From Phallusia mammillata (taxonomy: Eukaryota), in the NCBI GenBank assembly GCA_965637545.1, contig OZ281500.1:16802001-16866000 (forward strand): a stretch of DNA of 64,000 bases, given 5' to 3'. This document shows, piece after piece, positions 3,926 to 51,000 of the stretch. The number at the start of each line of letters is the position of its first letter. Position 1 is the first letter of the stretch. The position numbers and the translations under genes are program-made. The notes beneath the pieces were generated by a model. The model worked only from the letters and a program-made list of their open reading frames with translations, searched no databases and was not told the origin of the DNA.

Positions 3926-5984
3926 GGACCAATTGGACTTACTGGACAACCTGGACCTACCGGGCCGACTGGACTTACTGGACCACCTGGACTTCCTGGG
4001 CCAATTGGACCTACTGGACCAACTGGACTTACTGGGCCAACTGGACTTACTGGGCCAACTGGGCCTCCTGGGCAAACCGGTTACACTGGACGAAGTGGTA
4101 CAAAAGGAGCGAAAGGGCAACCTGGAAGAGAGGCCAGCAATAATCCAGAAATTATAAGTGAGTTGTATCTTTAATTGATTAACTATTGTAACGTTTTACA
4201 TGCACAACAATTTGTTTTATTCTTTTCCCGGTGTGCAGGACAACGTGTATAACGATACCTTAATGCTTATACGCAGGTTTTTTTAAGGTTTGGTTTGGGT
4301 GACCGCTAAGTAGTTTTAAGAGACTTTCGAACCCCCAAAACACCTTAAAAAAACACTTCCCCCACTTATTCTTTTTCCGGACGTGGACTATTGATCGTAG
4401 GCTATATTCGTATTATCGACAAGACATAGCGAGAAACAACCATTACTTTTCTACTGTAGTTGCCAGTCCAAATTTTGGGAAACCGCTGGAGAAATTTGGG
4501 GGACCGTTTCGGTCCCCCAAAACACCTTAAAAAAACACTGCTTATACCTCTTGTCGTAGTTTATAAAAGTTACTAATTTAATTTGATTGTTAAACTTATT
4601 TGACGCTCCAAGCAACAAGAAAGTCCGAGAGTGTTTTAAGGAAAGGCCATTTCAGTTGGACACAAATAATTTTTTTATTTCATTCAAAATGATATAAAAT
4701 AAACATCGTATAACTAGTGTCATATTACCTCAAAAATTGCCTTACTTTCAGATCGCATTCGACGCCTGGAAGAACGCACTAATGAGCTTCGGATAGGTTG
4801 GTGAAACCATAGAACAGTTGTACAATGCCTTGAACGTTTTCATGTGTTCTATTGAACTTGTAAAAATAAGATCACTTTGTTTTACTAATGGCAACCTCCT
4901 ATTCGTATTAAACAAAAAATGCTTTACAAGATGTATATAAGAGTACAAGTTGAGTAAGAAGTACAGCCGCAAGTTGAATGTGTCTCAATTTTTCACAATT
5001 TTATGTGTATCCTACGTCGAATTGGAATGAATAAAATTACTGCTGTTTGTGCGGCAGAAGCTCAATGGTTGAGTGGAAGGGTCCGTACTGGAAAAAATGG
5101 ATATCTTTACAAGGTCGTAGAACATGCACATGGCTATTTCAGCGGAAAAAGGGCCTGCGCTGCGATTGGAGGTCAAATTGCTCATACTGGATTTGCAGAC
5201 AAATCCACTTATTGGTTAGTTTTGTGAAATTACACAATAAAATGGTGTGATTGTATTGTAAAAATGCAATGTTATTACTGCAATGTCAAGTTTGATTGCC
5301 ACCAAAAAAAAACACAGCTTAACTGCGTAGTATTGTTATAACTCGAGAATTGATAATATTACAGAATTGCTGGGACTGCCCTTGGAAAAAAGTTTTCGGC
5401 CGCGCTTAATTTTGCCAAGCAAAACTGAGAATAGGTCCCCCTAATTTTGCAAAGGCTCGAAACTTACTGTCATAGCGTTTTACGAAACCTAAAACTACCA
5501 TGGTTTAGTTTACGGTCGCCAGATGTATTTTGCATGAAAAAAATCCAACAACATTACGATGGACACATGAGCAAATCATCACGTTCTCACTTTCCACCCT
5601 ACAAGCCTTCCTAAATTCAAGACGCTTTGTTTGAAAAAATTGGGCAAAGTACAGTACAGTCGTTGTTCCTAGAAATAACCGAAAACACATATACCGAAAA
5701 AAATGCGCGTGTTTCATTTCACATTTTATAGGAGTGTCATGACAGACTTTTACGATGGTTTGGAGGTATACATTGGATTGACAGATCGGGCCCGCGAAGG
5801 TACATTTGTGTGGGAAAACGGGGTTCCGGCGAGTTCAGGGTTTACATACTGGGGTTGGTACGAGCCCAACAACTGCTGTGGAGGAGAGGATTGTACCTAT
5901 GTTGCTTCTGATGGGGACTGGATTGACGCGAGTTGCTACTCAAGCAAACGCCACACCCTCTGTGAAAGAGCCCCCTTTTCGTAA
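3926..5984 (+). CDS. Collectin copy A (type I), 3' part: collagen exon 3926-4157, neck 4752-4796, CRD exons 5058-5214 and 5732-5984; signal exon not in window
   Basis: GT-AG exons with compatible phases (0/1, 1/1, 1/2, 2/stop). 23 Gly-X-Y triplets; neck [15 protein letters not shown]; CRD with 4 core Cys, YIGLTD, EPN and WID. No internal stops in these exons. Confidence 0.88.
4274..4540. mobile_element. hAT MITE in intron of collectin A
   Basis: TIRs CAGGTTTTTTTTAAGG / CCTTAAAAAAAACACTG. TSD CTTATACG / CTTATACC. Paralog B has the empty site near 8976-8990. Confidence 0.8.
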
Positions 5985-6714
5985 TTCCATTGCCACGGAA
6001 TCCCATGGTTCCACGCATAATAAACTCTTCATCGTGATTCGAAGAGTTGTGGATTTCTCCATCGGTTTATTATAAAATTGCAATCACCATTACTAATTAC
6101 AGTTTATAAACCTAATCAATTGTTGCAGTTTTGTCGATTGTTTTCTTTTAATAATTTTAAACGTTGTAAGTTCGCTGGTTAACCTTATATAGTCGTGCAT
6201 TAAACCTGAATCATTATCGTCTATCATCTCCTACTATAGCATTAACATGGTATCTTTTCACGCCATTGCGCACGTTATCAGTCATTGATTATAATAATCA
6301 ATAAATGTAATATGTATAAAATGGTGACACGTTTTTCCAACATTACAAGTGAACAGAATAAAACTTCTTGCAAGCAAATTGTTGGATACTGCGCACCACC
6401 ATTAGATCACCAGCAGTTCCAACTTCCTAATTAGTTGGAAGTTAAGTGCATCCATAGGTCGTATCCTGGGTGCCTGTGGTCAAGCTGTATCAACGGTCCA
6501 AACCAGATCAAATAAATTAAGAGCATTAGTAACATCTTTGACATCGACGGGTCGTGTTTGTAAGACTTAGGATCTACTGCGCAAATGCAGCCTTATTTAA
6601 AAGCAGCAGCAAAGTTTAGGCGAGTAATTCAATAGCATTACTCAAAATCAATTCGTTAGGTTCGTGTCAAAGGTTGCCAAATGACAGTTGACTTTGTCGC
6701 GTCATAGTTCTGCG

Positions 6715-48054: not shown

Positions 48055-51000
48055 TCTATCCACACATTGCTTGTTTTGATTATTGTGTCAGCAAAAGTTG
48101 AGTTAAGTTTATTTTGCTGGGTGAAACAAATCGTAGCAGCACAAATGCGCTGAATATATTCACCAACCGGAAATGGCTGTGCACCCTTGGGACGTTATAA
48201 AGCGCGTTATAGGTAAGGCCAAAGTTGATGAAAAGGTAAACGCTCTGCAGCTACACCTTTTCTAAACACGTTATGTCGCGAGAACTTACATTGAAGGGTG
48301 AGGTTGGCGCATTAGGACATCAAGACTATAGGAGGCTACGTTAGTGAAACCAGTCCAGTTGGGATCTTAAAGCTAACCACCCGTGTAAAGTTGTTTGAAA
48401 CTGTGTGTATATTTTTTTAATATATGTTGTTTGTACAAGGGGTCAACTGGACTTACTGGTCCAACTGGACCTACTGGGCGAACTGGATTGAAAGGACGAA
48501 GTGGTAGAAAAGGAGCGAAAGGAGAACCTGGGGCTGGAAGTCATTTCAACCCTATTCGCGCATTTGAAAGTGAGTTATCTCTTTAAATGATTGACTCTTT
48601 TGCCGTATGTTATGCACATTCATTTGTTTTGTGTTCCGTTCCCAGCGTGCGGAACAACGTGTATAGATGCTCATAACATAAGCCCCTTGCCGCAGTCTGT
48701 TTAACTTTATCAATTTAGTTGAGTTGTTAAACGTATTTGAAGCAGAGTGCAAAAAAAGGCCGACATGGATTTAAAGAAGGTCCATTCCAGTTCGACATTT
48801 TATGTTTGTCAAATTTTTATTAAATCCAAAGTCATGTGGAATAAACATCGTATAACTAGTGTCATATTATTTTAAAGATTGCCTTACTTTCAGATCGCAT
48901 TCGCCGCCTGGAAGAACGCACTAACGAGCTTTGGATAGGTAGGTGAAACCATAGAACAGTTGTATAACCCCTTTTTATGTTTTTATGTGTGTTATTTGAC
49001 TAATGGATTTGTAAAGACAAAACTACATAGTTTTACCAATTCTCATTAAACAAAAAATGTTTTTATAGTATGTTAGTACAGCCGCAGGTTGGATATGTCT
49101 TAGTTTTTCACATTTTTAAAGTGCAGCCTATACGTAGAATTGGAAAGTTTAAAATTACTGCTGTTTGTTGTGCAGAAACCCAATGGGTAACCGGGAGAGT
49201 CCGTATACTGGAAAAAATGGATATCGTTACAAGGTTGTAGAACATGCACGTGGCTATTACAACGGGAAAAGGGCTTGCGCTGCAATTGGAGGCCAAATCG
49301 CTCATACTGGATTTGCAGACAAATCTATACTTACTGGTTAGTTTTGTAAAATTAAACCATAAAGTGTTATGATTGTGTTCTGAAAATACCTGGAGATTAC
49401 TGTAATGTCGAGTTTAAATGTCATCAACACAAAGTGTTGGGCGGCGCTTAATTTCGCCAACAAACCCGAGAAATGTTCTCCCTAACCTTTTAAAGGCTCG
49501 AAACTTACTGTCATGACGTATCACGAATCCTCCCAATGCTAAAAGGGCTTAGTTTGCGGCCGCAAGAGGTATATTGTATAAAAAAATCCAACAACATTGC
49601 GAAGGGCACGTAAATAAATCCTCACGTTCTAACTTGCCACCCTGAAATCTTTTTCAAATTCACGACGCTCTGTTTGAAAGAAATTATAGGGGCAACGTTC
49701 AGTACTGTCGTCGTTCCTGGAAATGACCAAAAACCTACCAAAAAACGTGTTTCATTTTACATTTTATAGGAGCGTCATGACAGACTTTTACGATGGTTTG
49801 GAGGTATATATTGGATTGACAGATCTGGACGTCGAAGGTACGTTCGTGTGGGAAAATGGGGTTCCAGCGGGTGAAGGATTTACAAACTGGGCTGGGGGTG
49901 AGCCCAACAACTGCTGTGGCGGAGAGGATTGTACCTATGTTGCCTCTGATGGGGCCTGGTCTGACGCGAGGTGCTTCTCAAACCGCCGCTACACCCTCTG
50001 TGAAAGAGCCCCTGCTTCGTAATTCCATTGCCACACCGAATCCCATGGTGTTTGTTCTTTTCACAAAGTCCTGTAAATAACTTTGCATAACATAGTAAAT
50101 ACTTCAGCAGGATTCACTGAGTTGTGGCTTGCTCAACCTGTTTATTATGACTTTACACCCACCGTCACTAATTACGGTTTATGAACTTAAATGTTGTAGT
50201 TTTGTCGATTGTTTTTTTATATATTTTCAAACGTTGTTCCTAAGCTCGGTGGTTAACCCTAATAGTCGTACATTTAAATTGAATCATTATCATCTCCTGA
50301 TATAGCATTAAAATGTTATACCTTTCATCGCCATTTCCCACGTTTTCAGCCATTTGATTATAATCAATAGCCATAATATGCAGAAAATGGTGACACTCTT
50401 TTTCATCCCTACAATTGAACAAAATAAAACTTCCTGAAAGTAAAGTGTGTTTAGCTTACTGCGCACCACCTTCATTAGATCACCTTTATTTGCAGCATCA
50501 GAATTAGTTGGAATATCAATATGTTAATCAATATGTTGAATCCTGGGTGCTTGATCAAGCTGTATGACGGGTCCGAACCAGGTCATTTGTAATGAGAGTG
50601 ACACAAAAGAAAATATTGAATAAATTGAGATCTTCAGTAAATCTTTTACGTCGTAAAAACGAGTCGTGTTTGTGAGGGTTAAGATCTACTGCGCAAATGC
50701 GGTAGGAACTCACAACACACACGGTTAGCTAAATACCGATGAAGTGCGTAAAAAGCGCAGCTATTTTAAAAAAACAGTGAAACTAGGATAGGGTTGGGGA
50801 CTAAATTTAACATAAACAACTAGGTTTTTAGGGTAATTTTATTGTTATTATTATTATTATGAAATCTCAGACTAACCCTAATAGCCCTAACCGTCAGCAT
50901 TTTTACACAAACTGCATTTTAAATATTTGAGTACGCCACCTACCGGAATTTAGCAAACCTACGTGCAGTAAGTTCCTGTGTCAGTAGTTTTACCCGCAAA

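Follow-up and report, generated by a model that had tools for sequence, protein, structure and literature searches.

Which proteins do the repeated collagen and lectin exons in a 64,000-nt stretch of Phallusia mammillata DNA encode (contig OZ281500.1, positions 16,802,001 to 16,866,000, forward strand; this whole stretch is called the window below), and how did the repeats arise? The original prediction, made from the letters of the window, read positions 3926-50022 as a birth-and-death cluster of eight collectin gene copies or fragments in two subfamilies. We found nine loci of one collagen and C-type-lectin gene family within ~60 kb, eight of them at 3926-50022 of the window and one, gene E2, upstream of it. 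The locus is clearly a real family of adjoining genes, some intact and others in ruins, whose proteins combine a collagen stalk with a lectin head. In our judgment, these likely form a lineage-specific birth-and-death multigene family that encodes secreted C-type lectins with a collagen stalk and a collectin-like architecture.

A local family with a common exon plan

The window (35-43% G+C, without any N) was scanned in six frames. Twelve Gly-X-Y collagen exons with 7 to 29 triplets each were detected at 3926-48538 on both strands, together with eight C-terminal C-type lectin-like domain (CTLD) exons, at 5742, 9490, 12822 (minus), 14884 (minus), 39326, 40840 (minus), 42765 (minus), and 49780. 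Pfam and PDB searches were performed exon by exon, and joined frames served for frame checks and for calculation of the ratio of nonsynonymous to synonymous substitution rates (dN/dS). The collagen exons matched Pfam Collagen (PF01391; E 2e-17 and 4e-12), and the second exons of the carbohydrate-recognition domain (CRD) matched Lectin_C (PF00059; E 2e-10 to 2e-11) over profile positions 37-107. The first CRD exon by itself gave no match in the Pfam or PDB search. The six-frame scans and Pfam agree with the eight copies or fragments originally proposed, to which E2 adds a ninth member outside the window. When one CRD2 exon was searched against the whole 240-Mb assembly, nine family copies were detected, all at C7:16.79-16.85 Mb, and the best CTLD elsewhere in the genome was only 48% identical to the family CRD2. 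These results indicate a closed local family with one member beyond the window. The analysis included 20 kb upstream of the window (L001 and L003), and coordinates marked L003 refer to this upstream stretch.

Exon borders were set on GT-AG sites by comparison among the copies. The common plan consists of a signal/Cys exon, one to seven phase-0 collagen exons, a neck exon of exactly 45 nt (phase 1 to 1), and two CRD exons. Exon 1 encodes a signal peptide, a short two-Cys segment, and the first three or four triplets, and ends in phase 0 with PGK(K/R) before the junction and GT after it. The internal collagen cassettes run from phase 0 to 0, measure 81-135 nt in multiples of 9 nt, and end in PGK(R/K/Q/T). 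The CRD1 exon (154-157 nt) runs from phase 1 to 2, and the CRD2 exon (247-253 nt) continues to the stop. A, C, E, E2, and F all have the 45-nt neck followed by a CRD on two exons, with the phases fixed at 1 to 1, 1 to 2, and 2 to stop; a phase-2 intron divides the CRD in every copy, and the one-exon CRD of vertebrate collectins occurs in none. An exon-for-exon architecture had been proposed for the whole cluster. It recurs in A, C, E, E2, and F, whereas B is without CRD1 and X1 and X2 consist of CRD exons only. The genes that follow this plan are as follows.

3926..5984, plus: gene A, 3' part; collagen exon 3926-4157, neck 4752-4796 (45 nt), CRD1 5058-5214, CRD2 5732-5984
L003:3760-3864, upstream of the window: gene A, exon 1
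L003:5599-5724, 6474-6554, 6994-7092, 7832-7939, 8590-8697, and 9279-9386, upstream of the window: gene A, six phase-0 cassettes
14648..20588, minus: gene C; exon 1 20588-20457 (signal and CC), cassettes 18089-18006, 17784-17695, and 17076-16942
Minus strand: gene C, 3' exons; last collagen exon 16593-16317, neck 16011-15967, CRD1 15369-15213, CRD2 14894-14648
42505..44820, minus: gene E (subfamily 2); exon 1 44820-44626, collagen exon 44310-44223, neck 43785-43741 (45 nt)
Minus strand: gene E, CRD exons; CRD1 43488-43335, CRD2 42751-42505
L003:2392-439, minus: gene E2; 242 aa open, intact, 7.6-9.6 kb upstream of the window
46380..50022, plus: gene F; exon 1 46380-46568, collagen exon 48440-48569, neck 48894-48938, CRD1 49176-49336, CRD2 49770-50022

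Canonical GT-AG sites and an open frame were present, as read, in A, C, E, and E2. Gene A had been suspected to be complete upstream, and its exon 1 and six cassettes were indeed located 0.6-6.2 kb before the window start. When joined, gene A has GT-AG sites throughout and an open frame of 473 aa with 97 Gly-X-Y triplets and the motifs EPNNCC...WID; the Cys segment after the signal peptide has been lost. Gene C, also with all sites GT-AG, is open over 388 aa with 63 triplets, and it alone among the intact copies carries EPN...E...WND. Gene E, again all GT-AG, encodes 242 aa with a signal, C-x5-C, 11 triplets, and EPNNCC...WID, and its PGKKGP spans the exon 1/2 junction. Only two copies, designated by letters that lack coordinates, had originally been taken as complete and open. 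Two copies in the window are so as read, at 20588-14648 (minus) and 44820-42505 (minus), but the last copy, at 46380-50022, is frame-shifted.

This last copy, F, was first read from the window letters as a pseudogene. Aligned with A, C, and D, its CRD1 exon contains two extra TA dinucleotides, at 49204-05 and 49327-29, that produce a stop when the exons are spliced as in the rest of the family. To 44200-50100 we aligned Logan contigs of three DNA samples, each from a different study, and of an RNA-type run (X8). The sole contig of sample X1 that crosses 49204 is without the two extra letters, and contigs of samples X1, X3, and X4 are without the two letters at 49327/49329, where the sample X1 contig is otherwise letter-identical to the window across 414 nt. 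The pseudogene reading was dropped because the read contigs do not carry the insertions. Without the four extra letters, F translates by script into an open 257-aa protein of the family plan. Thus, F is probably intact in real animals, and the window holds either assembly slips or a rare null allele. Other frame breaks of 1-2 nt in this genome deserve the same read check. The first intron of F (46564-47351 and 47943-48336) is full of very high-copy repeats, at which the summed contig depth in three samples reaches several hundred to ~1000 times the single-copy level.

Duplication, selection, and decay

The CRD2 identities bear out the two proposed subfamilies. Members of subfamily 1 (A, B, C, D, and F) are 79-97% identical to one another and those of subfamily 2 (E, E2, X1, and X2) 84-92%, with 61-70% between the two sets. 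For the neck and CRD of the open copies (A, C, and F; E and E2), dN/dS within subfamilies was 0.26-0.49 at a dS of 0.27-0.42. These ratios show that the intact copies are under purifying selection.

The arrangement of the copies preserves traces of how they multiplied. Genes E and F lie head to head across a shared intergenic region:

44821..46379, no strand: E/F head-to-head intergenic region, 1.56 kb, shared

This region is colinear with the intergenic region between E2 and A at 75-82% identity, indicating that what was duplicated was a unit of two genes, one from each subfamily, lying head to head. C and D are related by an inverted duplication around 21.1-21.7 kb, whose centre (21165-21669) retains the subfamily-2-proximal half of the pair intergenic region. 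D mirrors C exon for exon in a colinear inverted match. The identity between C and D is 95-96% in exon 1 and 92-94% in the collagen intron, neck, and CRD1, and falls to 79% in CRD2 and 77% in the 3' flank, whereas B and C remain at a steady 97-99% over the same segments. The 3' ends of C and D thus differ in origin, which suggests that a duplication breakpoint lies between CRD1 and CRD2 or that gene conversion took place there. The stalks have also changed in length. The cassettes of A alternate between types ending in EPGKT/Q and FPGKR/G at a spacing of ~1.4-1.6 kb, indicating that a two-cassette unit was tandemly triplicated; one and a half such units are present in C and D. Taken together, these comparisons show a history of pair duplication, C/D inversion, a recent partial copy (B), cassette duplications that lengthened the stalk, and insertion of a transposon into D.

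The decayed loci are B, X1, X2, and, with less certainty, D, which is probably decayed.

8657..9729, plus: fragment B; last collagen exon 8657-8879, neck 9194-9238 (45 nt), CRD2 9480-9729
12579..13081, minus: X1, pseudogene remnant of subfamily 2; CRD1 ~13081-12944, CRD2 ~12822-12579
40592..40840, minus: X2 (subfamily 2); the CRD2 exon alone, plus part of the intron before it (to 41796)
22239..39562, plus: gene D; exon 1 22239-22370, cassettes 24307-24390, 24918-25007, and 25825-25959
Plus strand: gene D, 3' exons; last collagen exon 28448-28724, neck 29263-29305 (43 nt), CRD1 38732-38888, CRD2 39316-39562
26841..26918, plus: exon-1 remnant, 3' half, F/E-type, identified by tblastn and blastn to exon 1 of C, E, and F
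30106..38636, no strand: transposon insertion of 8.5 kb in the neck-CRD1 intron of D; the counterpart intron of C is without the insert

Fragment B is without exon 1, and a deletion of 840 bp relative to C takes out CRD1, so that splicing from the neck to CRD2 would be out of frame. What remains of it is inverted with respect to C and matches the corresponding parts of that gene at 92-98.7% identity. Just upstream of B lies an open reading frame (7270-7809, 179 aa) with a weak PNMA (Gag-like) Pfam match. In pseudogene X1, a TGA stop, a 1-nt insertion, QPN in place of EPN, and replacement of the first CTLD Cys by Ser were found, and the upstream exons are absent. An inverted repeat of 400 bp (12102-12506 and 13300-13708, 92% identity) flanks this pseudogene. 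X2 has two TAA stops, KRN in place of EPN, and a deletion of exons 1-4. An E-type promoter scrap lies beside it at 41864-42062, suggesting a tandem copy of E minus exons 1-4.

Gene D has a single frame-breaker, a neck of 43 instead of 45 nt in the window. Since the small indels of F were unsupported by contigs, this frame break is untrustworthy either way. In the CRD2 of D, EPN is changed to RPI, EDC to RGC, and WND to RID, and dN/dS against the other copies was 0.8-1.2. Its collagen region contains an extra segment of 2.2 kb (25985-28149), in which the exon-1 remnant at 26841-26918 is located. Inside the transposon insertion, we detected a long interspersed nuclear element with an endonuclease/reverse-transcriptase open reading frame at 30534-32354 (Pfam RVT_1, E 1e-28) and, by inverted self-matches, an inverted-repeat foldback element at ~32717-37276.

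In sum, four of the nine loci are decayed or probably decayed and the other five are open or probably so; identities span 61% to 99%, and stops, deletions, and a transposon insertion are among the lesions. In line with the birth-and-death pattern originally proposed, intact genes under purifying selection lie among copies that are truncated, carry stops, or were hit by a transposon, and the identities are mosaic. These features support a birth-and-death family with some mosaicism, a textbook picture.

Stalks, heads, and the comparison with collectins

We then considered what the encoded proteins would look like. In each exon 1, Met is followed by a 12-residue stretch with a mean Kyte-Doolittle hydropathy of 2.2-2.9, signal-peptide-like by hydropathy only. 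Between signal and collagen, C carries CC, and E, E2, and F carry C-x5-C; A carries no Cys there. The uninterrupted Gly-X-Y triplets number 11 (E and E2), 14 (F), 63 (C), and 97 (A), and the stalks are rich in Gly-Pro-Thr and Gly-Leu-Thr. The 15-residue neck, NR(I/F/L)(R/Q)(R/K)LE..., has hydrophobic residues at heptad (3-4) spacing over only ~three heptads, as read from the sequence. In the head, the four Cys expected of a short-form CTLD are present, at the alpha-1, EDC, WxDxxC, and final LCE positions, and the EPNNxxxxEDC spacing of MBP-A is kept.

The sugar and calcium site varies among the copies. EPN is kept in six copies and lost in D, X1, and X2. The complete EPN, Glu, and WND site is found only in C and fragment B, so the earlier description of the heads as EPN-type stood for the six copies and was overstated as regards a full site. 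In A, E, E2, and F, the EPN, Glu, and Asp are present, but the Asn of WND is replaced, giving WID, WVD, or WSD, written W(I/V/S)D below. The same four genes carry a vicinal Cys-Cys directly after EPNN, in the calcium loop (5870-5900, 42610-42640, and 49890-49925; for E2, in L003). Cys-Cys and W(I/V/S)D co-vary, and C and B pair another loop with WND. The Cys-Cys state looks ancestral for the cluster.

By analogy with collectins, these proteins would be secreted, oligomerise, bind sugars, and have an immune role. The functional reading of the original prediction, an innate-immune lectin-pathway locus, likewise stands as an inference. Three chains would form a collagen triple helix capped by the coiled-coil neck and three lectin heads, and the N-terminal cysteines, where present, would link trimers into larger bouquets. 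The heads would bind microbial or other glycans multivalently via the calcium site around EPN, which is fully canonical only in C.

The order of parts in the cluster genes is that of the vertebrate collectins (MBL/MBP, CL-K1/collectin-11, CL-L1, SP-A, and SP-D; group III). Collectins have a signal, N-terminal Cys, a collagen stalk, a short coiled-coil neck on its own exon, and a C-terminal four-Cys EPN CTLD; the neck of the cluster genes is a putative coiled coil. Exon 1 of MBL2 ends within the collagen region, a feature that the cluster genes share. Another shared feature is the PGKxGP motif, and the subfamily-2 head scores best against collectin-11 and MBP-A, its nearest solved structures (47.6 bits), with CD23 2 bits behind (45.6 bits). 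By contrast, the cluster differs from vertebrate collectins in its phase-0 cassettes of 9-nt multiples, its Thr-rich stalk, the incomplete WND in most copies, the Cys-Cys loop, and the subfamily-1 head, which scores best against mincle and MRC2. By sequence, the CRDs are generic EPN-type CTLDs, and orthology with MBL is not established.

A word-index search with the longest open frame over one CRD2 exon, in a length band without full-length collectins, gave one weak match, a fish CLEC17A-like protein (41% identity). When the CRD2 of F was searched against a library of 1.84 billion proteins, neither a close relative nor any single-domain match at or above 96 bits was found; all of the 150 matches listed, which were ranked by summed score, had at least two matched CTLD stretches, and most were long multi-CTLD proteins. 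Look-alikes in the ESM Atlas were generic 'perlucin / Lectin_C' clusters only.

Collectin genes are known from other ascidians. Nine were reported in the draft genome of Ciona (PMC514892), and MBL-like collectins, ficolins, MASPs, and C3 have been described in several ascidian species (PMC5465252). Likened by description, the ascidian collectins (Ciona MBL-like and Styela plicata collectin-like) have the same architecture and a lineage-specific expansion (PMC5465252, PMC514892). The glucose-binding lectin (GBL) of the ascidian Halocynthia roretzi, a secreted C-type lectin, is associated with MASP and linked to activation of C3 (PMC5465252, PMC514892); it is without a collagen domain (PMC514892), in contrast to the 11 to 97 triplets of the cluster genes. 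Since collectin expansions in ascidians have been known since the Ciona genome, the category is not new. Some traits of the cluster are unusual, namely the paired head-to-head unit, the stalks, which are assembled from cassettes to widely differing lengths, and the heads with Cys-Cys and WxD.

Several observations weigh against the collectin-like reading. Gene A is without N-terminal cysteines. Vertebrate collectins carry the CRD on one exon, whereas the cluster genes carry it on two. The subfamily-1 head is closest to mincle (52.8 bits) and MRC2 (49 bits), ahead of collectin-11 (44.5 bits), and neither the word search nor the protein library yielded a close relative outside the cluster family. 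The Asn of WND is a calcium and sugar ligand in MBP-A; its replacement by Ile, Val, or Ser, together with Cys-Cys, puts classical mannose-type binding in doubt in most intact copies. For A, C, and D, the set of cassettes included in the mRNA is predicted from genomic sequence, and the assembly carries small indel errors or alleles, which leaves the status of D uncertain. Transcript support was not obtained: the contigs of RNA run X8 on 44200-50100 lay only on the high-copy repeats of the first intron of F, among runs recorded as RNA, none contains the E/F stretch, and in ~15 RNA-type runs of the species, next to none of the sampled E/F words were present. These runs are small, and their tissues and conditions are not on record, so the RNA result is a weak negative.

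A possible link to complement lies in the stalk. PGK-x-G-P resembles the MASP-docking motif of MBL and ficolins. A has five copies of it, and E, E2, and C have one each; counted in the looser form PGKxG, there are three in C, seven in A, and one in F. Each PGKxG motif of these five genes, including the three of C, lies across an exon junction. By this resemblance, MASP docking on PGKxGP would be a lead. In a search of the genome for MASP, which was limited, the best CUB loci were CUB-CUB-mucin-transmembrane genes, and MASP was not located. In one such region, L004 (G000:C1:28535001-28545000, minus), tandem genes encode CUB-CUB, a Ser/Thr/Pro-rich mucin-like stretch, and a transmembrane helix. 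Loci with the TED domain of thioester proteins were found in the genome, but NTR/C345C matches did not lie beside them, and C3 was not identified. A motif scan of the three shared promoters found no kB-type site. A palindromic cyclic-AMP response element (CRE), TGACGTCA, was present ~270-290 bp upstream of the ATG of E and E2 (45113-45120 and L003 ~2662-2669), and TTCCTTGAA was present 356-379 bp upstream of the ATG in A, C, and D. The conserved CRE and TTCCTTGAA matches may reflect mere homology.

These data also bear on whether the products, although real secreted collagenous lectins, activate complement at all. They could instead serve as mucus, tunic, matrix, self-glycan, or developmental lectins or as MASP-free agglutinins or opsonins, a view that we consider unlikely yet worth keeping in mind. 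It would fit the calcium site of A, E, E2, and F, four of the five intact genes, in which the WND Asn is lost and the loop carries Cys-Cys, as well as heads without specific sequence kinship to MBL, three shared promoters without a kB-type site, a genome search in which no MASP was located, and a Thr-rich Gly-Pro-Thr/Gly-Leu-Thr stalk unlike that of vertebrate collectins. However, the PGK-x-G-P at exon junctions in E, E2, C, and A resembles the MBL/ficolin MASP motif, and ascidian collectins are induced by inflammation in animals that possess MASPs and C3 (PMC5465252).

A more elaborate reading joins these features. The divergent pairs of a short-stalk and a variable-stalk gene would share a promoter and form mixed oligomers, the cassettes would tune the number of docking sites (1 to 7), and the heads would bind non-mannose-type sugars. 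Stalk length would then be tuned by duplication or alternative splicing of the phase-0 cassettes. The products of head-to-head collagen IV gene pairs co-assemble, and the E/F-type unit has a like layout of divergent genes with a common promoter region. We regard this combination as improbable.

Assembly, expression, and neighbourhood

Could the copy number be in part an artefact of assembly? Fragment B and one arm of the C/D palindrome would then be misplaced haplotype sequence. The B-C divergence of 1-3% lies within the allelic range between samples (~1.2-1.6% over 45228-46749), and small indels in the window, those in F, were unsupported by read contigs. On the other side, B stands in inverted orientation to C at a distance of 5 kb, with no gap in the sequence, and differs from it in its 5' end and by the deletion of 840 bp. 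Between the arms of C and D, there are two large insertions and a divergence of 5-23%, and the cluster copies differ among themselves by 1-39%. Between 52 and 82% of the 31-mers of 42.4-50.1 kb were present in the DNA of three studies, and other samples contained only 52-68% of those of the E/F region. DNA contigs of these three independent studies tile the 5' end of E and F, although some E/F stretches are without a contig; the read check covers this E/F part. We therefore consider an artefactual copy number very improbable.

Also very improbable, in our estimate, is that the whole cluster is a silent relic whose open frames are recently dead copies with nothing expressed: RNA contigs of X8 are absent from the first two exons of E and lie only on intronic repeats in F, the ~fifteen RNA-type runs are next to devoid of E/F words, and four of the nine loci are visibly decayed, but five copies keep all splice sites and an open frame despite a dS of 0.27-0.42, dN/dS is 0.26-0.49 in the open copies compared with ~1 in the decayed D, and the RNA runs are small and of unrecorded tissue and condition. 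The RNA data, one run on 44200-50100 and ~15 by words, gave the exon models no transcript support.

Downstream of the cluster, the original prediction had pointed to a secreted MIDAS-vWA gene. Such a gene region lies ~3.5 kb downstream, but nothing ties it functionally to the lectin genes. It is a direct tandem duplicate of 5.15 kb (53553-58704 and 58704-63875, 99.3% identity), in which one exon gave a weak Pfam VWA match (E 0.003). At this identity, either a very recent duplication event or an artefact of haplotypes could account for it.

The preferred reading remains a lineage-specific, collectin-like family of secreted collagenous lectins that has grown and decayed in place. Within 60 kb, the making and losing of recognition genes is visible at one locus, as pair and inverted duplication, stalk growth from 11 to 97 triplets, calcium-site divergence, transposon damage, and truncation. 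The copies offer natural contrasts between short and long stalks, between stalks with and without N-terminal cysteines, and between WND and WID heads. Among invertebrates, sea squirts are the nearest relatives of vertebrates, and their complement system, based on lectins, serves as a model for the origin of innate recognition.

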